This document shows positions 8,716-33,836 of a stretch of 37,009 nucleotides of DNA, one piece after another. Source of the DNA: Macrostomum lignano (taxonomy: Eukaryota); the NCBI GenBank assembly GCA_002269645.1, contig NIVC01002348.1, positions 1 through 37,009 on the forward strand. Direction: 5' to 3'. Numbering within the stretch: the stretch's first letter is position 1; every line of letters begins with the position of its first letter. The notes below the pieces were generated by a model, which had not been told where the DNA came from, made no database searches, and saw only the letters and a list, made by a program, of their open reading frames with translations. Both the position numbers and the translations under genes were made by a program.

Positions 8716-9152
8716 GAGGAAACTAGCGATTAATGCAGAAAAGTTCTAGAGGCTGCAATGTTTTAATTTTTTCCTATCGGTTCACACATATAGCACAAAA
8801 TCTTTTAGTCTTCTTAACTACTGAATTCAGCTTCCGATAAAATTCTTCTACACACCAGCTACACGCTGATCAGACTGCGTGTCTGGCTTCAAACAAAATG
8901 AACGTTTATCAAAGAAGCAGACCGTCCGAGCCTTCACGAGCCAAAAGATAAAAGCAAACGTGAGAAATGAAGTATTGCACTTCCGAATTTTATCGAGGTA
9001 AGTCAGAGGTATCTGTCAGCTTTTTTTAAAAAACTTTGATCTCGCTAGTTCCCCGTCCCTTGAAATCAGTAGTCCTGGACAAATATGAGCAACAAAACTG
9101 TCCATCATTTTAAGCTTTCTTTCTGAAGCCATCTCTTGGCCGCTCACTTATA

Positions 9153-9659
9153 TACGAGGGGCACTGAAAAGGTTCTGAGCCTCGGTGTGACGGAGAGAGA
9201 ATTGGGGCAAATACAACCAGCTTTTTTTCTACCAAGATGCACTTTTGTGACATTTTGATCGCAGTGCTTCGATACCACTCTGAAAAACTGCGTTGAGCAC
9301 CCCTCGATCCAGGAGGTCGCAGCATCCTCCGGTGCATCATCAGTGTTAAATCGCTGCCCACGGAGTGCCCGCTTGAGATGCGGAAACAGCTGTGAAATTC
9401 GCTGGGGGCAAGGTCTGGTGAATAGGCAGGGTTGTGGCAGCTCTGATTCCCTGACAGCTGCTGTCTTTGTCAGTCCACTGGTGTGGGCAGGTGCGTTGGT
9501 CTGCAGCAGCACTACACCACGGCTCAGCACTCCCCGCCGATTCTCCTTGATTGCCTTGAGGCCTTGAGGGCAATCAGATCGGCGTAGTAGGCACCCGTGA
9601 CTGTCTGCTTGTGCGGCAGAAAGTCCAGCAGCAGTGGGCTTTTTTTAGTGTCCCTCGTA
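9153..9659 (-). mobile_element. Internally deleted, degenerate mariner (irritans-like TIR), ~500 bp
   Basis: TA-CGAGGGGCACTGAAAA at 9153 and inverted TA-CGAGGGACACTAAAAA ending at 9659. The minus strand encodes broken transposase pieces LLLDFLPHKQTVTGAYYADL, LLQTNAPAH (HDNAPAH-like) and YSPDLAPSEF across frameshifts. Confidence 0.88.
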
Positions 9660-10332
9660 AGAACTTTCATACCTGAGGCTACCCCTACGCTATTTTTTGA
9701 GGCAGGGAAATTGGCTTTGGAATGATTAATACTTGTAGGACACCTACCAAGGATGGGGTCTGTCCCAAAGTCAAGTCTGCCGCATCTTCGACCGACTGCG
9801 CTCCAGCTTTGATGGGTCAGACGGTCTCGCACTGCTGGCAAGAAAATTGCAATTGTTGAGAACCCGATTGAGGTGGGCGGACATCTCATGGAGAGGAAGG
9901 TTGTAGAAGACATGAAAAGACATATTGATGAGATATGCAGCATGTAGTGTCTGCTAGGTGGGGTCCCATGCTAGGACAACGTATGTGTCGGTGAAGAACA
10001 AGGATCACCTGGCAGCACTGGCATCCAGGTGCTACCGCACCAAGCCTATTTGCCAGATTTTCCAAAAAGTCAAACCTCGGATCCGGTTTCTAACTCCGAT
10101 TTTTTGGGTGTCGTTAATTTTCCTTGTGTTAGGTGCGATGAGAAAACAAGTCCACTGTGAACTCTGTGTTAGTATGTGCTCACGTACGGTTTCTTTGCCT
10201 TTTATGACTCGCATGACTGGCTGACAACGTCTTGAATTAACTTGACTTATCGTAAGGCGGATGCAGCGAGGAGGCGGAGATCGCCCATTGAGCTAGTTCC
10301 TGGCGACCAATGACTTCCGCTGGCTGACACCA

Positions 10333-10420
10333 TTGTTGTTGGTATTATTGTTTTTGTTGGTGTTGTTGTTGTTGCTGTTGTTGTTGTTGTTGTTTTTGTT
10401 GGTGTTGTTGTTGTTGTTGC

Positions 10421-10463
<43 letters not shown>

Positions 10464-10480
10464 ACTGTTGTTGTTATCAT
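10333..10480. repeat. (GTT)n microsatellite
   Basis: Directly visible; explains the poly-Thr and poly-Leu ORFs. Confidence 0.97.
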
Positions 10481-10710: not shown

Positions 10711-13700
10711 ATGAAGCTGTTACAATATTTTCTTTTTCTGTACTTAACATCCGCCACCTCAGGCCTGGAGTTCAATCTGACAGTTGTGATTGAGCAGAAT
10801 GCTGTAAATGAATCTCTCATCGACCTGGCTGTGAGCAGACGGGTGAACTCGAACTGGAGACTGTTGCCAGGCCACTCAATGTCGCACACAATCGTGCAGG
10901 TGCCCGCGGATGGAGCTCAGCAGGCTGCTAAAGAAGGTGAATGACTGAGCTATTTTGTTTGCTATCACTTCAGAGACTCAATTCCACAGGGCTTGGTACG
11001 TTCCGGAACTTCGACACCCCTACGAGTCCTTAAATTTTTTTGGTAGCATTAGTGCGCATCTAGGATTGCACTAGATTGTATTTTGCTCCGAGAAACTTTA
11101 CTAAGCTTGCATTACAATTTCACCTACATTATATTAACCGAGTATACTAGCGGGTTGATAAGATCCAACCCACCAACATTAGCCTTGATGATTAGCAGTG
11201 AGTCCAATGGCAGTCGAAAACATCAATGCTTAACCTGCATTTGTTGTGTAAAATTGGAATCCTTTTATATAATTAACTCTATTATACTTACTACACCTGT
11301 ACCCCACAAGCTATCTACTTACTCCCAAATTTTTGTATCGTCAGCAGTCTTCTCTAAAAATTCAACTGCTGCTAAAATAATGTACGAGTAAAAGTGTATT
11401 TTCGAGCTCTAGTTGGCCGATAGTGCTTGTTTTTATCCCATTCTTTTCCTCGGGTCCGTCCCAGCTAAATATCCTCTATGTCACTCGCCATTCCAGTGTG
11501 CTCTCAGGATGGTCTGTCAGCTCTACTGGCAATCGGCAGCTGCGGTCTCGTCACGGAGCTGAGCTCGCTAGCCAAGTCGCTGCAACTGCCGTTCATCGCC
11601 CTGCCAACCGCTCTGTGCAGCCCCACTAAACTTCGTGAGCAGTCGAGTGGTCAATGCTATTGCTAACATCCAGTTCGCTTGAAAAATCAGAAGAGTAACC
11701 AAAGAGGGAATGCTCCAACAACTTCCTAAACGATTTAAGCTTAGCATCGCACTAAGTCGTATCAAGTATCAAGCAAGAGGAGGTTTGCATGCCATGTCAA
11801 AATAATTTCTAGTCTGATTTGAATTGATAAGCCGAGAGAAATTTCCGTGTTGACAGCGATTCTGACAACAAGAATATAATAAACGGCAGGTCCAGTGTCT
11901 GACTGTTTTGAACAAGGAAACAGAGACCAACAGGCGCACCCACTTCAAAGAGACTTTTTGACTTTAATAAAGAAAAGAGGCTTGTTTGACTCCACAAAGC
12001 TATCATATTTAACCCGCAGCATTTGGGGTCTTCGGCAACCACGAAACATCCGTGATTCTGGACGCAGCAATTTCTGTAATGGAGTCCACTCGAGCGGAAG
12101 AGATTGCAATTTTGTATGACCAGACAAATGGTAGGTAGTGTCAAAATACTATTAAATCATGATTGTGACTACTCAGTATAGGTGACATGAATAAATTCCA
12201 AAGTTCCTCAAACTTTTCCAAATATTTGCAGGAGGAAGAGTTTTAGAATCGCTGCAATCGCGACTCTCGAGCCTCGGCATCAGCTCCGTCCCTTTCAACG
12301 TCGACCCCACACTCAGCGGAGATCTTCTCTCCGAGAGGCTCAGACGCCTCATGAAGAAGCGCCTGTTCAACGCCATCGTCATGGCGACGCCTCGCAACGC
12401 GCAAAGCATCGTGGCAGCCGCTGCGAACGCCAGCGTCATGCAGCAGAACTACTTCTGGCTCGTGATTGACAGCGGCGGACTCAGCAAGTCCCATCTGACA
12501 CCGTTGTGTCCCAACAACTGCAACCTGGCTCTGCTCAGAGGAGGCACAACTGGCGTCAATCGGCCATCGGACTGTCCGCCTGCAGTGAGAGACGTCTTTC
12601 CGAGCTGCGACACCGACAGCATTCGGGTGAGCGCCAGCTGCCGTGTCGTGCCCTGCCCTGCCCTGCCCTGCCCTGCCCTGCCCTGCCCTGCCCTGCCCTG
12701 CCCTGCCCTGCCCTGCCCTGCCCTGCCCTGCCCTGCCCTGCCCTGCCCTGCCCTGCCTGCCCTGCCCTGCCCTGCCCTGCCCTGCCCTGCCCTGCCCTGT
12801 CCTGCCCTGCCCTGCCCTGCCCTGCCTGCCCTGCCCTGCCCTGCCCTGCCCTGCCCTGCCCTGCCCTGCCCTGCCCTGCCCTGCCCTGCCTGCCCTGCCT
12901 GCCCTGCCCTGCCCTGCCCTGCCCTGCCCTGCCCTGCCCTGCCCTGCCCTGCCCTGCCCTGCCCTGCCCTGCCCTGCCCTGCCCTGCCCTGCCCTGCCCT
13001 GCCCTGCCCTGCCCTGCCTGCCCTGCCCTGCCCTGCCCTGCCCTGCCCTGCCCTGCCCTGCCCTGCCCTGCCCTGCCCTGCCCTGCCCTGCCCTGCCCTG
13101 CTTTGCTCTGCTCGATTTGCTCTAAATCTATTTGAGCAGCAGTGTAACTGTACTCACATTAATACTCGATCTCCCATCAACCGAAATCTTGCACAGACAC
13201 TGGACATCCGTCTCGTGGATGCGATCGAGGCTCTGGCGAAGGCTCTCACAGACTCGCTGACTCAGCAGGGATTCCGAGAGAGCAACGCGTCATGCTTTCC
13301 TCTGCAGCCGTGGTCGTCTGGCTCTCAAGTGCTCAGCAACGTCATGTCTGTGAGTTTTTGGTTTCTGCATTTGATTTTTTCATTGCAGCGTTTTTGCTCA
13401 CTTCGACGCTCATTTCATTGCTCATTATTAACAGGTCTACAGGTATTTGAGCAGTTGCACTCGACACTCTGTCTCATTTCAGCTATCGAGCTTCGACTCG
13501 GGTCGCGGTGAGATTTCCTACAACTCGACAACAGGATTCTTTAACGCTCAGGGCGTCGAGATCGTTGCGTCATTTACTGAGCAGGTGGGAGGGGCAGCTG
13601 GGTTCGTGCTGAGCGGTCGGTTCAGCAGCGGCTCGCTGACGAAACTGTTCCACAAGAGCGGCGCTGAATTCGTGTTTCCCAACACCTTCACGGGGTTCAA

Positions 13701-15782
13701 CAATGCTACAATTATGATTTGTGCTCCGACTGTACGTTAACTGTTTATAATAGTAAAACAATTTATTTGTTACTTGAGCTCCTTTCCTGTGCAATCCTTA
13801 GGTCTCTCCGAACACCTTGGTAATCGCTGAACTTGGCAACGACACATTTATTGGAAGTGGCTTCGTTCCTGATTTGGTGGAATACCTTTCGAAGAAGTTA
13901 AACTTTCGGTATGCTTTTTATTTTAAAGTCTACATAAAAAACAATACTAACGGTCACGTCAAACGATACCGATGCAGGTATATTTTGAAGAGGCCCTCGG
14001 ACGGCCAGCCGGGCGCTCCTGTTGCAGGCTCGCCATTTTTCACTGGCTGCATTGGAGAGCTGCAGCAAGGCGTGAGAACATTTTGTTTAATTTGAAGTGT
14101 CTTTTTATACCGTTTTAGGAGGGCAAACCATAATTTCTCTTTTTCTACGAGCGTAGATTGTTAGCCTTGGAGCTGGATTATTCACCAAGACAACTGTTCG
14201 TGACGCCGTGATCGACTACTCCGCCGCGCTCTTCGCTGAATACCACGCCATTCTGGTGCCGAAACCAAAGCCGGCCACCAAGATGTGGAATGTTTTCTTT
14301 CCATTGACGTGGCAGCTGTGGCTGTGTCTGGCTGCCTCTCTGTTTGTGTCCGCATTCTTCGTCTGGATCATGGCTTACTACTCTCCGTTCTCAGCCTACA
14401 ATCTGCAACTCGAGTACTCGATCCGTGACGAGATCAGCTACTTCGAATACCTGTGGTGCGTCACTGGCTGTTTCATGCAGCAGGGCCAGGACTTTTATCC
14501 GTTCGCCACGTCGCCAAGAGTTTCTCTGGCATTCTGGTTCTTCTTCCAAGTGATTGTGTATGCGGCCTACACTGGTGAGCTCGGGGTGCAAGGGGTAAAT
14601 CATGTTAATGAGTGCAAAGTTGCAATTCTTGCTTATCTTCCATATCACAGCGTTTCTGACCTCAATGCTGACGGTAAGTGTGACCCAGCTACCAATAAAA
14701 ACGCTGGAGGACTTGGCCTCGCAGACTGCCATCAGACCCGGAGCCATACCCGGCACCAGCGCCCACCAGTTGATGAAGTCGTCAGACTCTGGCATCTACG
14801 GCGAAATTGGAGGCCTGCTTCTGGACGCGCCGAACTGTCCGTACGAGGTGCGCAGTCGTTTGATTCAGTAGTCATTGATGCAGGATATTTAGCACGTTTA
14901 ACCTTCTGTCAAAACATTTTCAGACTCTGGAAACTGGTAGCGTAGCTTGTCTTGGCGACGCTTCCCGGATGCGTTTCATTGCCCGGTCCAACTGCAAGAA
15001 AGCGTACGTAGCTGACGATTTGTTCAACGCGGCAACCGTAGCGTTCACTTATCCCGAGGACGCCATTTACGGTCCGGCGGTGGACTTTTAGTAAGACGCA
15101 GAGGGAGTATGCCTTTTGCTTTTACGAGCACTTTAAAAGCTGTCTGTGCTGCAATACCTTGACGCGGATTTTAAATGCTTTAAAATTGCTTTATGATAGC
15201 TTCTGCTCTTTTAACCGCACTTATTTTGCTTTCATGTTTGTGGTCTTTAAAAGTAGCCAGAATTAATTGTTGGTTCTTTAATTGTTTTTTTACTTTCTCC
15301 GTGTTCTGTGGTTCTCCGTAGCAATCGTCATTTCTTGTATTTTCCAGCATCTGAATTTTTTAAGAAAATTGAGCGGTTTCTTATTTGTTTTTGAAATTTT
15401 CATAACGCATTGAAACATTGCTGCATTTTTTCGCAAATTATAACTCCCTGTGCATCCGCAGCACTGCAAAGTCAAATTTGAACCAAAGTTAAACAAACTG
15501 TACCTATTTTTCAGTCTGAGCAAACTCAGCGAGACCGGTCAGCTCCAGCTGCTATTCGACAAGTACTACAAGACCGACTCTGATGACCAGTGCAGCGAAG
15601 GCGATAGTGACGCGAGCTTCACTGGCGCCGAGTCAATCGGTCTGGACACGGTGGCAGGCTGCTTTGTTGTCACCGGCAGCTTCTTTGCTGTCGGTCTGCT
15701 TCTGCTGGCTGGCGAGTTGGTGCTGGCGAGACTGAAGCGGCTGGACTGCTGCGCGAACAGTAGGGTCGCCCCAGCAGAATGA
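10711..15782 (+). CDS. F2: divergent ionotropic glutamate receptor-like channel (signal peptide, ATD, S1, M1, pore loop, M3, S2, M4), 12 exons, 840 aa, intact
   Basis: Exons 10711-10936, 11497-11634, 12020-12130, 12232-12626, 13197-13349, 13483-13731, 13802-13908, 13978-14071, 14157-14574, 14651-14847, 14924-15090 and 15515-15782. All are GT-AG with consistent phases and sum to 2523 nt. Motifs: FTKTTVRDAVIDYS (S1), FMQQGQDFYP (pore), AYTAFLTSMLT (SYTANLAAFLT variant), IKTLEDLASQT, hydrophobic M4. Confidence 0.92.
12650..13100. repeat. (CCCTG)n / (GGGCA)n pentanucleotide tract in F2 intron 4
   Basis: About 450 bp, with occasional 4-nt CCTG units; lies between donor 12627 and acceptor 13196. 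Confidence 0.98.
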
Positions 15783-16256
15783 CCGTCTGTGACTACTGAA
15801 TCACCCAGCTATGACTGGCATTACTTTGATCAAGTTTATTAAGTCCTCTTATTGAAACGCAATACAGCGTCAAACAAACAATGCAATCTAAATCATTCTG
15901 ATATAGTTTTCCTTTTATTTGACACATGAGCTACCCAAAATCCAACACAGAACTTGCGTAAAATCGAGCAACAAAAACACGTAAAAACGCTGCAACTCTC
16001 TACGGAGTATTTTGCTGCACATCTTGTACTAGAGCTAAAGGCCGTCACTCTTAAGACGTTAGTGTCGCTCTGTACGAGCTCTGTAGTATTGTAGAAAGTT
16101 GCTGTTTCATAACAACTTTTTCTTATCTAAGACTACAATTCAAAGAATGAAAATTTGTGAAGATACATGTATGCTAATTCGCAAGCTACGTTTGAAAGTG
16201 CTTTGGAGAAAAGGGTTTAGAGATATTTACCTTAAAATTATTGGGAGTAATTGTAG

Positions 16257-18640
16257 TTTCACCAGTGAACGAGCCGAGCCGCGCCTCGGCTGCGCCGGGC
16301 GAGAGCGAGAGACCCCGAGGCCCCGCCAGGGGCCGAGGGCGAGTTAATAATTTCTACCCATGGCGGCCGAAGGCCGACATGGGCTAGAAAGTAATTACGA
16401 GTAAATAAGTTAGCCTCCCATGCATTTTTTAATTTCACGTTTTTTCGCCAAAAATGCTCCTGTTTTGCAACCACTGCACCGATTGAGTTGAGTGAGGTGT
16501 CGATCGATAGAAAACTTTTAGATCTATCGAATGAACATACTCTCAAGTGCACAGATTTCTTAAATGAGCCGTAAATTAACTGGAAAGACGATTTTTCAAA
16601 AGTGCTTCTGGAAGATCTCAAAATTCTGGTACACCTTACGAGATACGGCTTCGACATCTGAAGATCAAAGTTGTAAAACTAAATTTCCTACAAAATGGTA
16701 TATGGCGCTTTGATTTATTTCTGCATCTTTATGTAGTTTTGGTGGGTTTTTTGGGTAAAAAAATGACCCTCATTTTATTATTTCCCCACTTTTTCCTACG
16801 AAGTTTTTTGAGTTTCGGCTTCAAAGCAGTACAGTTGGATGCGCAATGCAAAAATCTACAAGTGTCTAAAGTTTTGTTTTCCTACGATTCTGCAGTGCTG
16901 AGAAAATCGATAAAGATCGATTTTTCAAAAAATCACATGGCTTTCGTATTATTGCTCATTATAATTTTGAGAACATGGTGCGAATAATCCGACTTCGAAT
17001 TTCTATAGCATAGTTGCTGTACTATATTGGTTTGAATTGCCGCCGTCTGATTTCGCTGCTTTCGGGTTGAAAAATCGATCAGAAATTTGTGATTTTTGGA
17101 TGATTGGGTGCCCGAAAAATGGATGATAAAAATTTTAAAAGAAGGGTAGATCAAAGGCGGATACTGCAGCGAGTTGTACTATTGTCTGGCTAAAATCGAC
17201 CAAGTTTTTGAGAGTCTGCAACAAGTGCTCATGTGTCAAAAGTGATTGGAAATCGATAAGAGTAGAGATTTTTTAATATTTAGCTTGAAATCAGGCACAA
17301 TAACGCAATAGGACGACAATATTTTTATGAAATCTGATTTCCAACATAACGAGGCACATTTTTGTGCAATTTCTAGAGATTCGGTTCATTAGGTAAAAAA
17401 TTATCGATAAAAAACTGAAAACATGATTTTTGACACTTTTGTTACTTCCGGGGCTATTTAACCGGGAAATGGTAGAAATTTTGCACTGAAAACAATGCAC
17501 AGTGTTCCAGACAGTTAATTTAACAAATTTCTTGAGTTTCATAACGATTCGATGATTTTTCAGGTAAAAAAGTGTATTTTTGTACAAAATTCATCAGATT
17601 AAGCTGCATATCGCTTTGCAAAATTTGCATTTGCATGCGATTGCTTGCATAGCTTTGGCGTTATAGGCTAAGTTAGGCTGGTTAGAAAGGAAAGGAAAGG
17701 AAAGGAAAGGAAGAAATATTCGTACATACAATGTACACACCCGTCCCTTCCAAGTGGGGTTGTGGCAACGCGAGAGGGCTTGGCGGCTTGGTTTGGAGGG
17801 CGTGTAATAAGAGTAGCTTCATTCGACTCGCGCACAGACCAAGGAAAATTAGATCGAAAAACGGGCGTCACGTGATTAGGATTTCGCATTAAATTTAGCT
17901 CTTTAACTGAACATTTGAATTGCAAGCCCAGTACAAAGTTTGGCCGGTGGCAAGCTCCAAGTCACTACGTGTACATCCCCCCAGGCTTATTAAGTACGAT
18001 AGTACGATAGGTCAGGCGATACGCGGCTTATTAAGTAGGTATGTACAGTGTTTTGGAATAACTTTATTTATAGCTTTCTTTGCAACCCCGTTGAAGAAGA
18101 GGCTTAGGGAGGATCTTATGTCAGTTTAGTGTACTATCTGATTGATAGTATCAGTCAGTATGAGTATTAGGTCCCACAAAACTGGCCTGGCTTTCCAAGC
18201 ACTTAAGCTGATGCTAGAGGATCTTGCGCCGAAACAACCAGCTTAAATGGAGTTGTATAACCCTGCTACGCTCTAGAGACTTTAGACAATTTTTTTAGAT
18301 CGAGGGCCTATTGTAGAAGATTCCAGTTCATGGTTGCGGGCCAGATAAGAGAGGAAATGAAAGAGAATAGATGGAGAAGAGAAAAGACGAGATAAAAGAT
18401 AAAGATAAGGCAAGGCGAGAGAAAAGCGAGAGGAGAGGGGAGACTAGAGAGAGATTAGAGAGGAGAAAAACAGAACAGACAAAGAGAAAAATGGGATAAG
18501 TAAATATTTAAATTTTTCTTGAGATTCTCAGTTCTTTTTTATCGGTAAAAAACTAGGTTTATCAAGTAGTATGAAGACCCACGTCTAAAAAGAAGCCCGT
18601 TCACTGGTGGCAAAAAGACGTGTGCGTCTTCATACTACTT
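16257..18640 (+). mobile_element. Probable non-autonomous Helentron/Helitron2-like (HINE-type) insertion, possibly with nested repeats
   Basis: Absent from the homologous F1-R1 spacer (~6215-6235). Asymmetric inverted repeat CACCAGTGAACG (16260-16271) / CGTTCACTGGTG (18598-18609), then hairpin AAGACG-TGTG-CGTCTT (18615-18630). TTGTAG occurs at both junctions. No coding capacity recognised. Confidence 0.5.
17686..17710. repeat. (AAAGG)5 microsatellite
   Basis: Directly visible. Confidence 0.9.
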
Positions 18641-19821
18641 GTAGCCCTCACGAAGTGGGCAGAAGCAGCCGAAGAGTTACATGTATTGCAGATGATTAGA
18701 TTATGTCGATTATAAATAGCAGAAGAGCTATTTTATAATCGATTGAATGGGCAATCACACAGTTGTCCATAGTTGGTGTGTGAAATTTCGAGAAAAAGTA
18801 GCTTCAGTTGCTACTAAAGATATTTTAATCAGTAGTTTGTTCTATATCAGGAATTCTAGTGTTTCTACTAGCCATATTTTAATTCCTCTTATCATAAATT
18901 AAGTTTATTTAAAACCTAGATGCAACCGCGGTACTTTCAGAAATGTTTGTACCCGTCATACACACGGTTTTCGTCAAGTGATAGGAAGGAGTCGTATGGA
19001 AAAAATCTTAATTGTTCATTTCAGTTGAATAAAACTAGTTCAGATGCTGGGTATGTACGAGCGTACGGTAGCTCTTTGTTAAAAATTTAGTCAAATTTAT
19101 TAGTCAAATGGGTGAAGAAATTAAAGCTGAAAAAAGATACAAAGATTATTAACTTTAGAGTACACGAATAAAGTGCGATTTTTATGGCTCATATAAGTGA
19201 GTTATTTAGAAAATGATCAGTGCCAATAAGCCATTTCAACTTAATCAATTTAATCTACTTCCGTGATATTACGCATAATACGGCTATATTTTGTCATAGA
19301 AAGATTAAACGGATAAACCATTGTCCGTTTTAGTGTTTCGATCACTTTTTGTGATCTTTTTTTGATCCTTTGTGAGCCTGGAGTGAAATGGTGTTAGCCA
19401 TCCACTCCTCGCGCTGTACATTGTGCCGCCTTCGTGCGCCGTCCTTTCTACCCCTCTGTGGGGTGTGGGGGGGGGTATGCTCACCCGCTTATTTATCTGC
19501 ACGCCACCCTCTGTTCCACGTCGCTCGCTTTGGCTTTGCAGCTCAATTTTTTGTTCAATACTAGAACTTTTAAACTTATAAATATACGGTCGTAATTCCT
19601 TCACTGGTCGTTGATACACTTGCATATTAGTAGGTGCGACACAATCTAAAAACCTGATCGATAAAATTGTTGTCGAAAGAAGCCGTGAGTGGTAAATAAG
19701 CCGACTAAATACCCGCATGAGCTAAAAGTACAATAAAAACTTTTATAAAAACCTCTGAAAATGTTTCGCCCAAAAACAGGTTGTCCAAAAACTGCAAAAA
19801 ATCGATCGAACATCACGTGTT

Positions 19822-22587
19822 TCACCGGTAAATCAGCCGGGCTGCGACAAATTCTCCAGCAAGCAGCGCCAAGCCCATCGCGTAGAAACAGCCGGCTACC
19901 GCATACGGACCCGCCACAATGCCTAAATTAATCGCATCGGCGGACCTAGCGTTGCTCGAGGTTCTTCTGACACAGGCCGCACCAGTCTCCGGCTGGAAGT
20001 ATCTCTGTTTCAGCATCGGGATCTGGCCTGCCTCGTGTAGTTGGCGCATGCTGAATAAAATTTGCAGGGTTGCGACCAACCTTTTTGACTGATCAAAGCT
20101 CTACGTGCGTAGTCGTCATCGATAAATGAAAATTCGCTTACTATAGTAGTTGACAGCCTTTCCGTACACAGCATCCTCTGGCATTATGAAGGCCACAGTC
20201 GCGGCGTTGAAAACTTCCTCGGCTAAGTACCAGCGAGTGCAGTTCATTTGCACCAGGTATTCGATCAGCGACACGTCACCCATGCAAGCGATCTTGTTGT
20301 TATTGTCCATCTGTGGGAGCAACAGTTAAACAAATAATAGAGGGGCGCTTTAAAACCTTACAGTTGCTGACGTTACACGAAAGGAGAGCCAAAGAGCTGC
20401 TGGGTCTTCTTCAGAAACCTTAGTGTTAACAAATGGAATCAATCCATAGACCTTGATTCACATTAGGTATCGTGAAGAAACCAGGAAGTTTATTGTCGGT
20501 TATGAGTGTAAGATAAAAATCCAGAAAATTTGATCTCATTACTGCCTCATTATAGATAGGATCAAGGACCACTAGTAGATAAGTAGTCCGTGGATAGGAT
20601 AAACATGCGAACCAAGACACCATGGATTTTTTTACAACGGATATTTCTCGACAAGATTTGTCTATCGGCAAAACACATTTAGCGCAAAGCGAAAAAGCAA
20701 ATCATCAGTATGGGACTTTAGCGCCAAAAAGCAATACTCCCCCATCCATCTGAAAATGCTTACACTGAAAAACATGTAGAAGCTAAGCGCTCTATTGTCA
20801 TTCAATTCAAATTTCATATAATTTTCACGCATAGAAATTTTGTTTTTAACTCGTATGTTACCTCAGCGATGCAGCTGCGAGGTGACAGCAGCTTGCTGCT
20901 AAGCTGCTTGTACACCCCAGTCTGAGCAGTTGTCAGCAGAGTGTGCACATTGCCACCAGCTGATGCAGCTGGTATGATATTGTTCTGATCAGCCAAGTCC
21001 CGCAGAGTCTTAATTGGTACACTGGTCACTGACACGGTCAGCGTTGAGGTCAGAAAGGCTGCACCGAATTTTTTAGGATATTTCGGTTAGCTTTGGTTTA
21101 GTTGGAATATTATAAAGTTTATAGGCTCCATAAATGCCTACTATTAGCTGCTTTCAAGATATTGCAGATATTCTGAGAGCTTACGCAGGAAATACACTCA
21201 GCAACAGTTAAAATGCAACCCTCTAACTAGAAGAAAACTGATTCGCTTAGACGACCAAAAACGCATTGGTCTACAAAAAGGAACCCCATTTGTAATTGGG
21301 GTTCGACCCACTATCTAGAGCGGCATTTCCCGTGTTCTCGTGCCATCTACTGTTGCTTGGTCTTTTATGTTGCACTAAAATCCTAGAGCACTAAAAAATG
21401 GGATTGACTAAACTGCACCACCTGTGTACGCCGCGTAGATGATAACATTGAAAAACCACCAGAAGGCCAGCAATGTTCTTGGTGACATTGCGCTTGGGTA
21501 AAAGTCCTGGCCCTGCTGCAGGAAGCTACCGATCATGGTCCAAACATACTGCAAATAGCGGGCCTCGTCGATATTTGCACCGTCAAGATTCAAATTTGTG
21601 CTCGAGAATGGCGAAAAGTAGGCCAGAATCCATACGAAAAAGGCCGCTACGAAGACGGAGCCACCCAAAGCCAGCCACACAGTCCAGTGGAGCGGCAGGA
21701 ACACATTCCACAGGCCTGTGCGAGCCTCTGCACGAGGGACTATCACTCCGCTGTACTCCGCATACAGGTCCGTTGTGTAGTCGATCACTGCGTCCCGAAC
21801 TGTGGTCTTTGTGAACGGGCCAGCGCCAAGCTGAGCAATCTTAATCGAGCATGATAAAAGAAAGAGGCGATGGATAAAGTCGCAAAGATAACGCCATCGT
21901 GCAGAAAGTGTCAAGGGTAATAGTACACAGTCAATCGACTAACTTACACCACGCTGAACTTCACCAACACATCCGGTATAGTAAGGAGATATTGGACTGG
22001 GACCTCCCCAACTGACCATCGTCCGGACTCTTTGTTGTATACCTAAAATTTTTTTTGAGAGTTACAGAACTTACCAAAACTTACAAAATTTGGTAAACTG
22101 CAGTAACGCCATGCCGAAAGTTCCGTCTTTCGGCCAGAAAATCGATCACTTCGATTGCGAATCCAGTGGTAATAACGGAAGAATTCGAAAACTTCTGCTG
22201 GAACACTATCACAGGAGGATACTGCAAAAGGTGGCAAATCGCTGGGTTAAATCTCTGAAACTTTATCTAAGAGCGTAAACCACTGACGTCGCAAATATGC
22301 TGGGATGCTATTAGCTTAGCGAAGATAAATAATAAAGCAAAACATTAATACCGAGGGAGCGCAGGCCACAATGCTGGCATTGTTGAACCCTGTGAAGGTG
22401 TTGGGGAACACGAATGCACCGCCGCTCTTGTGGAACAGTTTCGTCAGCGAGCCGCTGCTGAACCGACCGCTCAGCTCGAACCGAGCTGCCGCTCCCACCT
22501 GCTCAGTGAATGATGCAACGATCTCAACGCCCTGAGCGTTGAAGAATCCTGTTGTCGAGTTGTAGGAAATCTCACCGCGACCCGAGT
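19822..22587 (-). pseudogene. R2: 5'-truncated iGluR-like gene (part of exon 6 through exon 12) with two frameshifts
   Basis: Exons on the minus strand: 22352-22587 (partial 6), 22115-22221 (107 nt, GC donor), 21948-22042 (95 vs 94 nt; extra T near 22010 breaks DGQWG), 21422-21839 (418), 20862-21058 (197), 20142-20310 (169 vs 167; extra TA at donor) and 19822-20050. Motifs FLQQGQDFYP and AYTAFLTSTLT. Confidence 0.88.
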
Positions 22588-22699
22588 TCCGATTTGAAAT
22601 TCAAAAGAAACACAGTCACATTCTATTTCGACAGAGGGATAAAACACAGCATATCGACGAACATAAGAGTAAAATGAAAAACAGGAACAAGACAGTGTC

Positions 22700-23210
22700 A
22701 GTTGGCCAACTTGAGACACCTAACCATCAATTGCCTGTCCACCAACGCAGCGAGGGACGTATGTAAACACATGGTTGAACCACTCAATGCATTTGTCCAC
22801 AGAGATGCAGCCAATGGTTCTGTCCACCATGTTGTACAGAATGTCTCGCCGATAGGCCGCCATTGACTGATTCCCGTGCTGCTCAGCTATCGGAGCGATA
22901 AAATTTTGCTGGTCTGCTGCCAGTTTTCTCTTCAGAGTGTCCTTCCAACAGGAGATTGAGTTCTCCACAGGACTCAAAAATGGACTGTATGGTGGAAGCC
23001 GCTTGACCTGAATGGTTTCCGGAATCTCGTAGGCTGCTTTTCCGCTCTCCCTGACCTCACAATCGTGTTCGCTGTTGACCTCTTGACTTCAAGTTGGCGC
23101 GCCAGTTCCACAAGTCATCCCCATGATCAGCAGCCCTGATGATAGGGTCTCGTCACTGTTGCTTAAACAATAGCGCCCTGCCGAGGCTGCTGTTCCATGA
23201 TATCTTCATC
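22700..23210 (-). mobile_element. Internally deleted Tc1/IS630-like (DDE_3-type) transposon remnant
   Basis: Minus strand shows HTH-like VELARQLEVKRSTANTIVRSGR (~23045-23112) joined out of frame to the catalytic end IQVKRLPPYSPFLSPVENSISCWK...CIEWFNHVFTYVPRC (stop 22720-22722). TIRs not identified. Confidence 0.75.
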
Positions 23211-25150
23211 GAATTCTGCTTCAAATTAATCGATTCCATCTTCCAGCAATTCATCGTCTTCTTCAATCTGATTTTCAGCATTCATATCGTTTCTTGTTGC
23301 GCAACGATTGTACAGTTATATATGCAGTATGACTTTATATACTTTATTCTTTATTCTTATAAAATAGCTTCTATATTCTTCTTTGCTACTGAACTGAAAG
23401 TACTCGTAGAAAGCTGTTTTACTAAGTATTTATGCCTATGCTTACCTCCCTGTAATTTAACAGTTCGACAGAAAACATCTGTAAGTTTTTCCCCAGAAAA
23501 TGTGGCCGCAAAAACTTATTAAGAAGGCGAGTTATTGAGCTTAGAAATGTACGCTTGCTCATTTTCTGTCAAACATTGCCATAGACAGCGGCCATAGACA
23601 ATCTTTGCCGTATAAAAATCCTTGAGCATACACTCTGAGACTGTGGTCAAAATCCTCCAGTTTATTTGAACAAAAGACAACATGGCGACCAGGTAACACT
23701 GAACAGCATTAACAAGTAAGGAAGTTACCAAGCTGCCTGTGCCGCAAATGATGCCCATCATTTTCAATGCACTCACGGAGCCGACCAAGGAAGCCGTCAA
23801 CTGCATTGCGAACAGCATCCGCCCGGTTCTGTCGAATCCAATCGAAAGCTGTAACAATGGCTGCGTTCAGTTGGTGGAAATCCAAGAAAAGACGAAGGAA
23901 AAACTGACAGATGTTTTCTGTCGAACTGTTGAATTACAGGGTGACAGGCAAAACGGATTACTCGCAGTTAGCGCACAAAGAGTTACCCTTTTTTGGGACA
24001 CCCGTTATGCCTGAGTGGCCCATCTAGATACCTCGTATTTTAGTATCTGTGGTTGGGACTTGCACAGCCAAGACTTTTTCTATGGTAGCTGCTATACCAT
24101 TTCAATTTCGAGCCCTGCACATACTACTGAATAGATTAGATTTTTCATAGTGTACCCTGGGGACATATCATAAGTTACATGTATGATGACCTCTTTTTCC
24201 CTTAACTGTTGCGACTGTAAAAATTCTGCGCTATTAAAGCATGAAACTTTGACCCTATAATAGAATATATTTTTGACGCGGATTTCCATACCGTTAACGC
24301 TTATTAAATTGAATTATTACGGTCATAAATGCCAAACAAAATAGAGAATCTTGCTTGTCCTATTGCTCAAAAATCCCTATAAGTAACCCAGGAATTTTGT
24401 TACAATGTAATAACTATGTGAATGCTCTGTTACTTTTCTATCGGTCAACCAGAGGCGGCAGTGTTGTCGGTGAAGGCTCTGAACAATTCAGACTGATCAC
24501 ATGTAGCCAGTCTGACGTCTTTGATTTGCAAATTGAATTATTTGCTCTGCAGCATTGTCGTGATCCGCTTGTTTTGCTATGGAAACATACAGTGTTTTTA
24601 CTGAGTTTTATTGATGTTTATTTGATTAACAAAAAATTAGCCATATTTAAATTGACATCAAAAGGATACTATCCACGCTCATTAGTCGAAACAATGCCAA
24701 TACATTGAGCTACTTCGTAGATAATTGCTTCCGTGCATCATTGCTCAACCAATGGACACTCTGTCTGCAATAATTGTCACGGAAGCAAAACAGCCATCAC
24801 ACAAAACACCCAATAAAAGCGGTAATTGAGTTTGCTGTGACTGTGGACAGCGCATTAGATAGACAGACACAAGATTTTACAGCCAGGAACAATGACGTAT
24901 GCGGACACTGCATTTAGCGTGTCATTTTGAAGAAGGAAACTGCTCTCCTAATTAAAATATCTTTTTCTACGGCTTCATTAAAAAATAAAAGCTTTTCTTT
25001 GGTAACTTTATTCAACCTACTATCAATGCACCGAGCGTTTTTCTTTTAATCGTCACGGTTCAATCTTTTTACTGGAATTGTGTAAGAAATATATTGTTAT
25101 AGAAAATTAAAATATAATGGGACCATTAAAGGTTCGTCTCAGGCCAATAA

Positions 25151-25585
25151 CAAGGGGCTTTAGCACCAAGGGGCTTTAGCACCAAGGGGCTCTAGCACCA
25201 GGGGTTTAGCACCAAGAGGTTTTAGCACCAAGGGGCTTTAGCACCAAGGGGCTCTAGCACCAGGGGTTTAGCACCAAGAGGTTTTAGCACCAAGGGGCTT
25301 TAGCACCAAGGGGCTCTAGCACCAGGGGTTTAGCACCAAGAGGTTTTAGCACCAAGGGGCTTTAGCACCAAGGGGCTCTAGCACCAGGGGTTTAGCACCA
25401 AGAGGTTTTAGCACCAAGGGGCTTTAGCACCAGGGGCTTTCGCACCAAGGGGCGCCAGCACTAATAGCGCTATCCTCAAAGGCGCCATGAAGGGGCCTAA
25501 AGGGAAAAATAAAATGAATTTTCAGGTAGGAGTTCATATTAATACTCGTAGAATAAAAAACCAATTCACTCGCACAATAAAGGGG
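25151..25585. repeat. 15-16-bp minisatellite (GGGGCTTTAGCACCAA) with 62-bp higher-order period, inside an insertion flanked by a 17-bp direct repeat
   Basis: Higher-order unit starts at 25201, 25263, 25325 and 25387. TCGTCTCAGGCCAATAA at 25134-25150 and 25586-25602. Confidence 0.85.
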
Positions 25586-27307
25586 TCGTCTCAGGCCAAT
25601 AATCTGTGATTGGTTCCCGATGAGAGATGAAGAGAAAATCTACAGTCGAAATGCAGTTGTGAATTGTCAGTATAATAGAAAGAGCTGATTAATATTTACG
25701 ATGGCAGGATTTTTTTATATGCTTTGAGCATGCTGGCATACTCAACCCTTTACGAAATGAAACTGACCACTTTTGTCTTACTGTTGAATTCAATGTCAGC
25801 CACCTCTGGCCTGGACTTCAAGCTGGCAGTTGTGATTGAGCAGAATGCAGTGAGCAGCTCCCTCATTGATCTGGCTGTGAGCAGACGGGTGAACTCAAAC
25901 TGGAGACTGTTGCCAGGCCACTCAATGTCGCATGCAATTGTGCAGGTGCCCGCGGATGGAGCTCAGCAGGCTGCTAAAGAAGGTGAGTATCATAGATTTA
26001 GGCGGTTGAAACTAGTCTGTGACTGTAGTCACATCGTTATGAAAGTTGGGGTTCTCGGGCACAAAACCGGCGTCAAGTTTGATGATGCGTTTGGCGCTCA
26101 TGACGACCCAACTCCACTTTGCCCATGCCGAATTAATAGTGATTGTGATCAAAAAAGTAATCCTCGCATCTTTATGCTTATGGGTCAACGGAATCCAACA
26201 TATCAAAAGTGTTAGCCACTCGCGATTTTAGTTTGCTCCCAGTCAGGTCTGTCAGCTCTTCTGGCAATCGGCAGCTGCGGTCTCATCTCGGACCTGAGCT
26301 CGCTGTCCAAGTCCCTGCAACTGCCGTTCATCGCCCTGCCAACCGCTCTGTGCGAGGAGGGATATTTTCGTGAGTAACAGTGAAAAATCATTAAATCTAT
26401 CGGAGTTCGGTTAATTTTCGAAAAATAACTCAAGTAAGCTAAAATTACTGACAAATAATGTTTATGGAGTCATTTTCTCGGGCTATTTTTACCGCTCTTT
26501 CTCTTTCAAGATGTTTCCGATAAAAAAGAGACTACTAGACTACACTAGACTATACGAGCTAACTAAGTGTTCTTAGTGGTCCCTCTAACAAACTTGTGCC
26601 CATCACAGAGGAAGTCACAATTACTAAATCATAAATTGCGAAAAAATTTCCAATGTGATTCGAAAGACACAAGCGATTGACACTTTAGGGTACGGAGCCA
26701 TTGGCAGTCACTCAGTGTCTGAGGTTATCGGCGCTGCAGCCGAAATCATCTCAACCCTGGATGAAAAACAAGTGGCCATTTTGTACGACTCATCCAACGG
26801 TAAATAGTAATTACTAATTTAATGAATACAAGTATTTTTATGATACTGCTGTGATTAATAGAAATTAGTTAATAGTACTGTAACTCAAATTCCACTCTAC
26901 ATTTCTTATCTCACAGAGAATGGCTTCATCCAGTTGCTGCAGACGCGACTCTCGAGCATCGGCATCAGCTCCGTCCCTTTCAATGCCGACCCCACACTCA
27001 GCGGAGATCTTCTCTCCGAGAAGCTCAGGCGCCTCATGAAGAAGCGCCTGTTCAACGCCATCGTCATGGCGACGCCTCGCAACGCGCAAAGCATCGCGGC
27101 AGCCGCTGCGAACGCCAGCGTCATGCAGCAGAACTACTTCTGGCTCGTGATTGACAGCGGCGGACTCAGCAAGTCCCATCTGACACCGTTGTGTCCCAAC
27201 AACTGCAACCTGGCTCTGCTCAGAGGAGGCACAACTGGCGTCAATCGCCTGCAGTGAGAGACGTTTTTCCGAGCTTCGACACCGACAGCATTCGGGTGAG
27301 CGCCAGC

Positions 27308-27814
27308 TGCCCTGCCCTGCCTTGCCCTGCCCTGCCCTGCCCTGCCCTGCCCTGCCCTGCCCTGCCCTGCCTTGCCCTGCCCTGCCCTGCCCTGCCCTGC
27401 CCTGCCCTGCCCTGCCCTGCCCTGCCCTGCCCTGCCCTGCCCTGCCCTGCCCTGCCCTGCCCTGCCCTGCCCTGCCCTGCCCTGCCCTGCCCTGCCCTGC
27501 CCTGCCCTGCCCTGCCCTGCCCTGCCCTGCCCTGCCCTGCCCTGCCCTGCCCTGCCCTGCCCTGCCCTGCCCTGCCCTGCCCTGCCCTGCCCTGCCCTGC
27601 CCTGCCCTGCCCTGCCCTGCCCTGCCCTGCCCTGCCCTGCCCTGCCCTGCCCTGCCCTGCCCTGCCCTGCCCTGCCCTGCCCTGCCCTGCCCTGCCCTGC
27701 CCTGCCCTGCCCTGCCCTGCCCTGCCCTGCCCTGCCCTGCCCTGCCCTGCCCTGCCCTGCCCTGCCCTGCCCTGCCCTGCCCTGCCCTGCCCTGCCCTGC
27801 CCTGCCCTGCCTTG
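27308..27814. repeat. (CCCTG)n / (GGGCA)n tract in F3 intron 4
   Basis: About 500 bp, nearly pure; same intron position as in F2. Confidence 0.98.
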
Positions 27815-30007
27815 CTCAATCACCAACACACTGAGAGCATCAAAGCTCCAGCAATAATTTTCAGCAGCAGTGTACTGTACTCACAATAATACTCGATCTC
27901 CCATCAACCGAAATCTCGCACAGACACTGGACATCCGTCTCGTGGATGCGATCGAGGCTCTGGCGAAGGCTCTCACAGACTTGCTGACTCAGCCGGGATT
28001 CCAAGAGAGCAACGCGTCATGCTTTCCTCTGCAGCCGTGGTCGTCTGGCTCTCAAGTACTCAGCAACGTCATGTCTGTGAGTTCGTTCTCGCTGCTCACT
28101 TTATTGTGCATTTCACTGCTCATCGTTAACTGATCTCAGATGTGAGCAGTTACACTCGCCACTCTGTCTCATTTCAGTTATCGAACTTCGACTCGGGTCG
28201 CGGTGAGATTTCCTACAACTCGACAACAGGATTCTTCAACGCTCAGGGCGTTGAGATCGTTGCGTCATTCACTGAGCAGGTGGGAGCGGCAGCTGGATTC
28301 GTGCTGAGCGGTCGGTTCAGCAGCGGCTCGTTGACGAAACTGTTCCACAAGAGCGGCGGTGCATTCGTGTTTCCCAACACCTTCACGGGGTTCAACAATG
28401 CTACGTTGGTCGTTTGCTGTCCTATGGTAATAATCTCGTAAAAATATCACAAATTTTCTTTATAAAATCGAGAGTACTTATGCCAATTTCTTGTTGTTTT
28501 CAAGGTTTTCCCGTCCGCCGGTTTAATTGAAGATCTGGGCGATAATTTTTACAAAGGATATGGAATGGCTCCAGATATCCTTAAATATCTGTCTTCTAAA
28601 TTGAACTTTCGGTACGTAAGAAAATTGGAGTGTAAAAGTGCGAGACAATCCATTCTTACATGCCCGCTCTTGAAAATTTCAGATACATCCTCAAGAAACC
28701 TTACGACGGAGAGTGGGGTCGCCCGAATCCCGGCTCCAGGATCTTCACCGGCTGCGTTGGAGAGACTCAACAGGGGGTTTGTCAAGCAAACAGTTTTGTC
28801 CTACTTTTTAAAGTATCAGTGCAGTGAGGCAACACCGGTCCTCTCAAAAAAATGGAATGCAATTAATAACCAGAACGAGAATCTAAAATGGGCATCTTGA
28901 GATGAGATGTTATATTGTTATGAGCATTTCTCGTTTTGCATAGGTCCTTTTAAAAATTTCAGTACTCGACAGGATTATAATCTAAACGTCTATTGTAAAA
29001 AAAGGTCTAAACGTATATATTCTAAATATATTATAAACGTCTTTTTCGAGGTGGTCGACTTCTCAGCCGGGTCGTTTACAAAAACAACCGTACGAGCTAC
29101 TGTGATTGACTACTCGGCAGACCTGTACCCCGACTACAACGCCATTCTGATTCCGAGGCCACAAGAAGCGTCCAAGATGTGGAACGTGTTCCTCCCTCTG
29201 CACTGGCAGGTGTGGGCCTGTCTGGCTGGCTCATTCTTGGTTGCCGCATTCGCTCTTTGGATCCTTGCGTACTTTTCCCCGTTCTCCGCCATTAATCTGG
29301 GCCTGGAGGGCGCTATCAGTGACGAGGCCAGCTACTTTGAGTACCTGTGGACCATAATCGGCAGCTTCATGCAGCAGGGACAGGATTTCTATCCCTACGC
29401 TACGTCCCCTCGGGTGATCCTTGCTTTCTGGTGGTTTTTCAATGTTATCATTTATGCGGCTTATACAGGTAATCGCCAAGTTACATTTACGCTGATTGAT
29501 GAGATTTAAATTCAGATATTTTGAGCAGTGTTGTCATATTAATTTTGAATTCATCTTCAGCCTTTCTTACATCGTTTCTGACGATCACAACCACGGAATT
29601 GTCAATAAGGACGCTACAGGATTTGGTCGCGCAAACTGACATCGTACCCGGTTACTTTCCTGGTAGTAATTTGGACACTATGTTGAAAAGCAGCACGTCT
29701 GGCATCTACAAGCAGATCGCTGACATCATGGTTCCTGCGCCTGAGTGCCCGAGTTTGGTAGGCCTGAAACAGTGCTTGGGATACACTAGTTTGAGCCGTT
29801 TTTTTCTGAAATCGATCACATAGATACCTACCGGCAAACCATTTTTAGTTTACAGGACTAGCAATCAGCTCCCCGTGTTGGGGAGAGAAAAAAATTTAAT
29901 TCTTTTTTTTGAATAAACTATATGTAGCTTCTCCTCGCAATAAACAAAGCGTTAACGCATTGACATCTTAGCTATTCCCCCCGTAAGCCTTGAAATCTCA
30001 GCAATTC

Positions 30008-30080
30008 CCCTAAACCCAAACCCTTACCCTAACCCTAACCCTAAACCTAACCCTAATCTTAACCATGATCCTAACCCTAA
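30008..30080. repeat. Degenerate telomere-like (CCCTAA)n tract in F3 intron 10
   Basis: CCCTAACCCTAACCCTAAACCTAACCCTAA visible; interstitial and imperfect. Confidence 0.75.
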
Positions 30081-31174
30081 TTTCGTGTTCTTTCAACAAA
30101 AAGACACAATTTCTGTAAAATCTCTGGGTCAGCTAAATAGTAAGAATACCAAGCCATTTTTCCGCCCGTCGAACTACCAAAGGTGGGGGGACGGCATTCT
30201 GCTGTGCCGGAAAGGAGCAACGCAGGCGCACGAAATTCAAGGACACGGCTAAATTTTTGTTTAGCACCTTCTCAAACAAGAATCAAGTCGCCAGCCTTTG
30301 GGACCGTCGAGATATTCGACGATTTTGCCAGAAGGTCGGATTTTTTCCATAAGGCTAATGCATTCAATGCCAAGGGAAATTCCCCCGTGGTAGTTCTACT
30401 GTTAATTAGAGACGCATTCAAGACAGACGTTCCTATTGGACAAATGTACGTGTTCTCTCTTTTAGTTAAATAATACTTGTCTCTTGTACTCCCCAGTAAT
30501 AATACTCGTACTCCCCTAATAGCTTAGGGGAGAAATTGCGCATACAAGTTTTTTTAAATTGCCTTTCACAACGAACGCACCTATTTCAGTCACTGCATAG
30601 CAACATAGCCTGCATGAACGATTTAATGGCAATGAAAGCCATGGCCAAGCTCAATTGTTCTCGCGTGTACATCGCTGACGAAGTGTTCAATGCGGCTACT
30701 GTGGCGTTTTTGTACCCCGAGGATGCCTTCTTTGGCCAGCTGATGGACTACTAGTGAGTATCAGTAGTATATACTACTCAGTAGAAAGCTCGCACAGCTT
30801 GCAGAAGGTGCTTGCTACGTCGAAAGTTTCATTTACCTTTTTGGAAATTTACAAGGGTGCGACTCTGTCAAGTTCCTTGGGTTCGACCCTAAATTCTTAC
30901 TATACTTTATCATTTTCATACGGAAGTTTATTTATCTGCACTGCTCTGCTCTTGCATCAATACGATGTTCTGTCGAAAAATCGATATTAATTTTATATTA
31001 GCTCATATTTTAAGATTGAGGAATACTTTGAGCTATACTCTAAGCTACAGTTTGTTTATTGCAGACTGAAGTATCCTTGATTACAAGTCCTCCTTCGTAA
31101 GCAGTTCTAGGATGCCGAATCAGAGGCAGGGGGCTGTTTGCACCCTGGCGCATTTTAAGCGACATTGTTACCTC

Positions 31175-31478
31175 GTACACAACCGGCGAGAGTAATCACT
31201 GCCCACCCCGCCGACTCCTCTGAGCAGGCACACAAGCGCGCGGATGCGTACGCAGTCATACGCACAGGCACACACTCACACAGGAGTGCACAGCGGCCCT
31301 GATTTTATTTATCGTTAGGCATGTACACTTCACTGTGCCTTGGGGGTTGGCCCTAATTTCACAAGCGGAACTAAGTCGAGATTCCTATTTAGCCCCAAAT
31401 TAATGTGACTGCACTCGCAATCGAGCCTGGGCCGCTGGCACACCAGAGCGCCGCGTGGACCACTGGGAATCGGCCCCC
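31175..31478 (-). mobile_element. tRNA-derived SINE, copy 1 (F3 intron 11)
   Basis: About 300-bp dispersed repeat shared with 33515-33836. The minus-strand 5' end is tRNA-like (GGGGCCGATTCCCAGTGGTC...GGCTCGATTGC). Confidence 0.7.
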
Positions 31479-33514: not shown

Positions 33515-33836
33515 TTTGTATCACAACGAGTTTGAGTTTGGTTACTGCCCATTCCGTCGACTCTCCTGAGCAGGCACACAAGCGCGCGGATACGTGCGCA
33601 GTCATACGCACAGGCACACACTCACACAGGAGTGTACGGGGGGCCCTAACTTTATTTATCATTCGGCATGTACACTTCACTGTGCCTTGGGGGTTGGCCG
33701 TCAAGGGCGTTAATTGCACGAGTAGACTTAAGCCGAGATTCCAATTTAGGCCCAAATTAATGTGACTGCACTTGGGATCGAGCCTCGGACGCTGGCAGAT
33801 CAAAGCGCCGCGCTAGACGACTAGGCTATGGCCCCC
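33515..33836 (-). mobile_element. tRNA-derived SINE, copy 2 (F3-R3 spacer)
   Basis: Minus strand begins GGGGCCATAGCCTAGTCGTCTAGCGCGGCGC...GGCTCGATCCC, with A-box-like and B-box-like motifs. Body aligns to 31175-31478. Confidence 0.72.

Follow-up and report, generated by a model that had tools for sequence, protein, structure and literature searches.

Why are three neighbouring receptor genes nearly identical up to one point inside an exon and so different directly beyond it? The question arises from a 37,009-nucleotide (nt) stretch of the Macrostomum lignano genome (GenBank assembly GCA_002269645.1, contig NIVC01002348.1; the whole stretch is referred to here as the window), which holds a lineage-specific cluster of ionotropic glutamate receptor (iGluR) genes in approximately three tandem units. 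Three of these genes are central to the problem: F2 and F3 on the forward strand and R2 on the reverse strand. A preliminary description of the locus proposed that their exon 6 sequences agree up to the codons for FNNA and then diverge at the first strand of S1, that is, at the boundary between the amino-terminal domain (ATD) and the ligand-binding domain (LBD). It attributed this to concerted evolution of a constant ATD with diversification of the ligand-binding half, as in constant/variable receptor systems. Here, we report a computational analysis of this boundary. The break is sharp and lies at the domain junction, the homogenised segment covers only the C-terminal part of the ATD, and its probable origin is interlocus (ectopic) gene conversion among nearby direct and inverted paralogs, with the 3' edge held mainly by a limit of homology.

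Exon 6 comprises 249 nt in each of F2, F3 and R2 and aligns without gaps. Over nt 14-224 (211 nt) the mismatches number 8 for F2-F3, 11 for F2-R2 and 7 for F3-R2, whereas over the remaining 25 nt (nt 225-249) they number 12, 11 and 13, respectively; the per-site difference thus changes from 3.3-5.2% to 44-52%. A maximum chi-square test with 5000 permutations, applied to the three pairs, places the breakpoint after nt 227 for F2-F3 and after nt 224 for F3-R2, and all three pairs break within nt 224-227 (p <= 2e-4). The 11-mer TTCAACAATGC has exactly three occurrences in the window (13696, +; 22377, -; 28391, +); this count alone is not significant, as at least three matches, with one mismatch allowed, were seen in 14 of 100 shuffles. 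The peptides reported to follow FNNA (TIMICAPT, SIVACAPS and TLVVCCPM) are all present, as are the contrasting exon 7 peptides VSPNTLVIAELG, YPPVIVFQQKFS and VFPSAGLIEDLG. The boundary lies within the exon, 24 nt before its donor, and in the full-length phmmer alignment the F2 sequence FNNA|TIMICAPT pairs with SNRS|LIVTTIL of GluK2, which is the first S1 strand. The near-identity, the in-exon divergence and the placement of the break were therefore correctly described.

The extent of the shared sequence is a different matter. The part of exon 6 to the left of the boundary (exon 6a) is common to all three copies, but R2 shares just these 211 nt, whereas F2 and F3 share a continuous tract of ~1.46 kb with sharp edges, which includes two introns and begins ~20 nt into exon 4, inside the ATD (Table 1). 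Synonymous divergence between F2 and F3 was estimated for each segment by the Nei-Gojobori method (dS and dN, synonymous and nonsynonymous divergence; pS and pN, the corresponding proportions of differing sites). The dS values are 0.46 in exon 1, 0.19 in exon 2, 0.08 in exon 4, 0.03 in exon 5 and 0.12 in exon 6a; exon 3 is saturated (pS 0.76, dN 0.61), and so are exons 6b-12, to the right of the boundary (pS 0.68-0.87, dN 0.22-0.65). When pooled, both pS and dS are ~0.08 in exons 4-6a, whereas in exons 6b-12 pS is ~0.72 and dS is saturated, with a right-hand pN of ~0.30. The intron 4 flanks and intron 5 of F2 and F3 align at 72% and 65%, respectively, compared with 49% for shuffled sequence, a level that the alignments of introns 1-3 and 6-9 do not exceed. 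Because synonymous and intronic sites are homogenised along with the coding positions, the tract indicates that DNA was copied from one locus to another by gene conversion, rather than that the protein was constrained.

These values also change the picture of a constant and a variable half. The sequence to the left of FNNA is indeed homogenised, and in more than three copies (see below), but only in the C-terminal part of the ATD. Exons 1-2 are intermediate, and exon 3 and the initial ~20 nt of exon 4 are as diverged between F2 and F3 as the LBD is; at the amino acid level, exon 3 of F3 is ~74% identical to that of the R3-type ATD (by peptide count) and ~37% identical to that of F2. R2 has no ATD at all. 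Nor does the ligand-binding half appear to be actively diversifying: with pN/pS ~0.4 and saturated dS, its differences look like old divergence under purifying selection, and conversion patches occur there too.

To view the boundary at the level of the gene family, we compared the window copies with M. lignano protein fragments from UniProt, using distance matrices and no formal trees. Five types, namely F2, F3, R2, an R3-type (P0013/P0009) and an X1-type (P0012/P0001), are 93-99% identical in amino acid sequence over the block formed by exons 5 and 6a, whereas identity falls to 20-72% for the products of exon 7 and to 60-79% for those of exon 9 (R2-R3 excepted). A sixth paralog, X2 (P0002/P0014), serves as an outgroup and shows ~54% identity in both the block and exon 9, which is roughly how the block would look had it never been homogenised. 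The relationships of the two segments are thus incongruent, and the block is common to at least five LBD types. The UniProt models join the block to type-specific exon 6b peptides (TIMICAPT in P0010, TLVVCCPM in P0008 and SIVICAPS in P0009). Variants of the block do not follow the LBD type: AGFVL occurs in F2 and F3 of the window, and ARFEL in the F2-type fragment P0010 and the F3-type fragment P0008. In the X1-type P0012, an R-like exon 6b (SIVACAPP) is joined to F2-like exons 7-9; at least one tract therefore probably ended at the exon 6/7 junction and not at FNNA.

The state of the individual copies bears on what holds the edge in place. R2 is a probable pseudogene, judging by its exons. 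Its 5' truncation falls 13 nt into exon 6; the exon 6 acceptor is missing and an in-frame stop lies immediately upstream, the exon 7 donor (22115) is GC and not GT, exon 8 carries a +1 frameshift, and the exon 11 donor (20144) is disrupted by a 2-nt insertion relative to R3. No ATD exons were found upstream of R2, and neither anchored ungapped comparison nor local alignment against shuffles gave significant similarity to exon 5 or intron 5 upstream of 22587. A reading of the 36 nt upstream of the block as a diverged intron 5 with a mutated acceptor was dropped, as ungapped comparison and shuffles gave no significant similarity, and 22587 is now treated as a truncation or rearrangement edge. 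Directly upstream of R2, an open reading frame (ORF; 22723-23088, -) has a weak match to the DDE_3 transposase (E = 7e-4), below the Pfam curated cut-off; it may mark the event that removed the 5' half of the gene.

F3 is damaged in another way. In its exon 4, 16 nt (CGGCCATCGGACTGTC) are deleted at 27245/27246, which shifts the frame; their counterpart in F2 is 12561-12576. Since F2 and the R3-type model P0013 both keep these 16 nt, the deletion appears to be derived, and, as it lies inside the homogenised tract, conversion has not mended the F3 frame since. The M. lignano models P0003 and P0013, which match R3, carry an F3-like ATD and the exon 5-6a block. Most copies in the window are damaged and only F2 is intact.

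The FNNA boundary is not the only trace of copying in the array. R2 and R3 share a tract in which 47 nt of intron 8 are followed by the complete exon 9, encoding the end of S1, M1, the M2/pore loop and the start of M3. Its flanks are unalignable, one edge lying in intron 8 and the 3' edge at the exon 9 donor. An identity of 94% is also seen between F1 and F2 in exon 12, the last exon, and between R1 and R2 in exons 11-12. Young, sharp patches at several places in the genes indicate that the array is a conversion mosaic, in which the FNNA boundary is one edge of the largest patch.

Gene conversion between nearby paralogs in both orientations has probably spread young, sharp-edged tracts over anciently diverged genes. 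The largest such tract begins in mid-exon 4 and reaches codon 75 of exon 6, where FNNA forms its 3' edge, and a 211-nt piece of it survives in the truncated R2. To the right of this edge the sequence is diverged to saturation; heteroduplex would be blocked there, and successive tracts would stop at or before the same nucleotides. A homology limit of this kind would hold in a pseudogene as well, where selection is gone. We infer such a limit because R2, although non-functional in appearance, shows the identical 3' edge, and because equally sharp edges without domain meaning exist in mid-exon 4, in intron 8 and at the exon 9 donor. The edge may first have been set at the domain junction by selection for ligand specificity or by chance. 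The ~0.5-kb, G/C-rich (CCCTG)n minisatellite in intron 4 may be the initiating hotspot; its opposite strand, (CAGGG)n, fits a G-quadruplex motif. ORFs continue through the array, which they translate as PALPC repeats, and the R3-type model P0013 likewise includes it.

Several points weigh against this interpretation. Selection against conversion of the LBD would equally give three copies that end no more than 3 nt from the domain junction. The role of the minisatellite is one that we infer from its position alone, and the 211-nt tract of R2, which is without upstream homology, may be a mere remainder after truncation. GC content at third codon positions (GC3) is 0.72 in the tract compared with 0.65 (Fisher p = 0.07), which is a trend only and weak against the rise expected from long-term biased conversion. 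Finally, the 1-nt frameshifts of R2 and R3 could be assembly errors, an explanation that is unlikely for the 16-nt deletion of F3 and the truncation of R2.

The main rival to a homology limit is modular evolution delimited by selection, in which tracts that enter S1 are purged since they would change ligand specificity, and homogenisation of the C-terminal half of the ATD and the linker would be tolerated or even favoured, for example for co-assembly of paralogs. We regard it as unlikely. It accounts for an edge at the junction of the ATD linker and S1 in three copies and for a block common to at least five LBD types, and the ATD is the domain through which iGluRs assemble (Croset et al., 2010; PMC2924276). 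The S1 arginine and the S2 aspartate are kept in all LBD types and neighbouring pocket positions differ, which is compatible with distinct ligands. Nevertheless, the 5' edge of the tract lies in the middle of the ATD at no domain limit, with exon 3 as diverged as the LBD; R2 and R3 have undergone conversion inside the half encoding the LBD and the transmembrane domain (TMD); R2 has the same edge despite its pseudogene look; P0012 suggests a tract that passed FNNA to the end of exon 6; and only one copy in the window is intact. If the boundary were held by selection, it would suggest that flatworm receptor diversity combines a shared assembly module with different ligand-binding modules.

Less probable still, in our estimate, is a single historical junction: a young 5' segment would have become joined once to older LBD-TMD cassettes, through unequal crossover or segmental duplication, and the junction would then have been passed on by tandem duplication instead of arising repeatedly. 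The coincidence of the edge within 3 nt in all copies and the build of the array from ~14.7-kb duplicated units would fit such an event. However, the LBD halves of F2, F3 and the R genes are saturated at synonymous sites and the blocks differ by 3-5%, and one duplicated chimera cannot yield both. In addition, the block variants are shuffled relative to the LBD type, and the tracts differ in age (dS 0.03 in exon 5 and 0.12 in exon 6a; 99.4% identity in exon 9 of R2 and R3).

An artefact of assembly or polishing in a highly repetitive and recently duplicated genome, by which reads of one paralog locally overwrote the others, is very improbable. The 1-nt frameshifts (R2 exon 8, R3 exon 9 and F1) do resemble long-read indel errors, and the edges of the 99.4% R2/R3 patch are razor-sharp; but within the block each copy has substitutions of its own, the differences amounting to 3-5%, and the independent UniProt models P0010, P0008 and P0009 show the block together with the same type-specific exon 6b peptides.

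We give equally little credence to the idea that the exon 4-6a block and its G-rich intron form a recombination module which swaps the promoter and ATD between LBD-TMD cassettes, in the germline or even somatically, although, if true, recurrent cassette switching of this sort would represent a novel mechanism of diversification for an ion-channel receptor. The R2 cassette, which has no promoter, no ATD exons and no exon 6 acceptor, sits between inverted copies of the block, with F2 8.6 kb and F3 5.6 kb away. An F2-R2 or F3-R2 inversion would place a promoter and ATD in frame with the R2 cassette, and if recombination between the direct copies caused a deletion, the F2 ATD would come to lie in front of the F3 LBD. 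Against this idea, R3-type copies have an ATD of their own, R2 is defective in other ways too, and the two duplicated units of the window are collinear.

The least credible explanation is a nucleotide-level functional element in exon 6a (RNA structure, regulatory or antisense) under purifying selection: it would explain the conserved synonymous sites of the block, but not an F2/F3 identity that spans two introns and a minisatellite over 1.46 kb, and there is no Rfam match anywhere in the window and only ~50% protein identity at this place in the distant paralog X2.

Table 1. Positions of the iGluR-like genes, remnants, homogenised tracts and associated repeats in the window.
Feature	Position	Strand	Description
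F1 remnant	5589-6040	+	Last exon and 3' flank; 94% identity to F2 15473-15920; frameshift at ~5794
R1 remnant	7126-7716	-	Exons 11-12; 93.7% identity to R2 19764-20355; in-frame stop
F2	10711-15782	+	Intact iGluR-like gene; 12 exons, 840 amino acids; open ORF, all introns GT-AG
F2 exons 1-6	10711-10936, 11497-11634, 12020-12130, 12232-12626, 13197-13349, 13483-13731	+	
F2 exons 7-12	13802-13908, 13978-14071, 14157-14574, 14651-14847, 14924-15090, 15515-15782	+	
Homogenised tract in F2	12251-13709	+	Mid-exon 4, intron 4, exon 5, intron 5, exon 6 up to codon 75/76
Minisatellite in F2	12638-13101	+	(CTGCC)n = (CCCTG)n pentanucleotide, 94 copies; intron 4, middle of tract
Boundary	F2 13706-13709; F3 28401-28404; R2 22377-22374	F2 +; F3 +; R2 -	End of ATD-LBD linker / first residue of S1 strand 1
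R2	19822-22600	-	5'-truncated paralog, exons 6-12 only; exon 6 at 22600-22352
R2/R3 conversion tract	R2 21421-21886	-	466 nt, 99.4% identity; partner ~36600-36135 (R3)
Exon 6a block copy in R2	22377-22587	-	211 nt; 96.7% identity to F3, 94.8% to F2; inverted relative to F2 and F3
F3	25757-31786	+	Paralog with 12-exon structure as in F2; exon 6 at 28178-28426
Homogenised tract in F3	26936-28404	+	Partner of 12251-13709; 89% identity overall (blastn)
Minisatellite in F3	27307-27815	+	(CCCTG)n, 102 copies; intron 4
R3	34195-36554	-	R-type paralog, exons 9-12 in window, 5' part past window end; 1-nt indel shifts exon 9 frame

The intact F2 gene allows the domain structure behind the boundary to be read. 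Its product has an amino-terminal LIVBP-like domain (PF01094 ANF_receptor, residues 39-355, E = 8e-17) that aligns with the ATD of GluK2, followed by PF10613 Lig_chan-Glu_bd (443-528) and PF00060 Lig_chan (542-806); residues 41-820 align with GluK2 30-817 in one continuous phmmer alignment (5kuf, E = 2e-40). According to Pfam and this alignment, F2 keeps the S1-M1-pore loop-M3-S2-M4 order with a bipartite LBD. The S1 arginine that contacts the agonist alpha-carboxyl group is kept, TKTTVRD of F2 pairing with A/TITYVRE of GluK2, and the acidic alpha-amino contact in S2 is kept with a Glu-to-Asp change (CLGDAS paired with LMESTT); the same Arg and Asp are found in F3, R2 and R3. The pore-loop motif MQQG is retained, but in place of the gating motif SYTANLAAF the M3 segment of F2 has AYTAFLTSM, in which only YTA is retained. 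The marks of divergent chemosensory ionotropic receptors (IRs), namely loss of the ATD (except in co-receptors) and of the glutamate-contact residues, were not found: ATDs are present in F2, F3 and the R3-type P0013, and the Arg and Asp are kept. R2 does lack an ATD, but owing to its truncation. By its predicted AMPA/kainate-like architecture, F2 fits the iGluR superfamily and is not a typical ATD-less IR. A (TTG)48 run lies upstream of F2 at 10333-10475.

Self-comparison and tblastn show that the array is built of a tandem unit of ~14.7 kb, each unit consisting of one convergent gene pair, F (+) and R (-). The pairs along the window are F1/R1, of which only 3' remnants are present, F2/R2 and F3/R3. 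The close protein matches of the translated exons are solely M. lignano iGluR-like proteins. When proteins were searched exhaustively for relatives of the exon 9 product, eight matches at E <= 1e-30 were obtained, followed by ordinary iGluRs at 25-35% identity, and this steep drop indicates a lineage-specific family. By exact peptide matches, the UniProt fragment P0007 corresponds to F3 exons 5-6 and P0004 is a frameshifted model of F2. The public R3-type models P0003 and P0013 read through introns (the minisatellite, ~480 amino acids between exons 6 and 7, and 36897-36766 on the reverse strand) and also skip exon 8; the existing annotation of the M. lignano family is therefore unreliable.

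Other repeats and reading frames occur around the genes. The expected place of the F1 body is occupied by a 23-nt satellite (TTTAATGTTTGACATGGTGGCTC; ~171 copies, 83% matches, 808-4732), which is preceded by an 18-nt repeat (CCCAGATAGCAAGCATCC; ~33 copies, 1-594). Long ORFs at 9147-9970 (-), between R1 and F2, have no Pfam match at E < 0.01; one of them, 9147-9644 (-), had looked mariner-like by eye, which Pfam did not confirm. A 16-nt/62-nt tandem repeat (CAAGGGGCTTTAGCAC; ~19 copies, 25151-25453) precedes the F3 start codon by ~300 nt, and no counterpart was seen upstream of F2. Within F3, intron 10 contains an interstitial telomere-like (CCCTAA)12 array (30008-30080), and a segment of intron 11 (31198-31478) recurs as a dispersed direct repeat downstream of the R3 3' end (33544-33836; 82.6% over ~290 nt). 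Rfam and tRNA scans of the whole window were empty.

[quoted passage not shown] Whole-protein trees of the Macrostomum family will mislead, and the ATD and the LBD/TMD should be analysed apart; for dating of the duplications, exons 4-6a should be left out.

How does this boundary compare with known systems? A theoretical framework is that of divergence-limited gene conversion between duplicates, also known as 'escape from conversion', which was reportedly treated by Walsh in 1987 and by Teshima and Innan in 2004. The theory predicts stable, sharpening boundaries between homogenised segments and those that are too diverged for heteroduplex, and the flatworm edge may be of this kind. As a lead only, recombination and conversion hotspots are associated with minisatellites, and immunoglobulin switch regions consist of G-rich pentameric repeats; the F2/F3 repeat resembles these as a long G/C-rich pentanucleotide array, intronic and at the centre of the converted tract, a likeness of position only. 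The analogy with constant/variable receptors turned out to be loose. Unlike immunoglobulin, T-cell receptor or variable-exon loci, there is no single shared constant segment joined by splicing or rearrangement: F2 and F3 each have their own exons 1-6, and the junction lies mid-exon without a splice site.

Non-allelic homologous recombination drives the expansion of iGluR/IR chemoreceptor families in tandem arrays (Croset et al., 2010; PMC2924276). The flatworm array is likewise an iGluR-derived tandem multigene family in a protostome, with divergent LBDs and non-allelic homologous recombination as a driver, but F2 keeps a full ATD and the Arg and Asp that bind the agonist backbone. Domain-limited concerted evolution is not described for IR arrays in that paper. 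Conversion boundaries at domain junctions are documented for protocadherins and immune receptors, whereas our literature searches found no report of ATD-limited conversion in iGluRs.

The closest precedent is the regional gene conversion of the clustered protocadherins of fugu and zebrafish (Yu et al., 2007; PMC1852091), also reported by Noonan et al. (2004), as cited in PMC1852091. In both systems tandem receptor paralogs have one coding part homogenised, including its synonymous sites, and a divergent part that bears specificity, and the boundary lies mid-exon at a domain-coding position, EC4/EC5 in the protocadherins and ATD/S1 here. The differences are also clear. In the protocadherins homogenisation affects the 3' part of individual large variable exons, with identity above 99% and clearly raised GC3; in the flatworm array the tract extends over three exons and two introns, one of which contains a minisatellite, identity is 95-97%, GC3 is not significantly raised, some of the copies involved are inverted, and most visible copies are damaged. 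The kind of process is therefore well known, and the Macrostomum cluster is a new instance of it in a new family.

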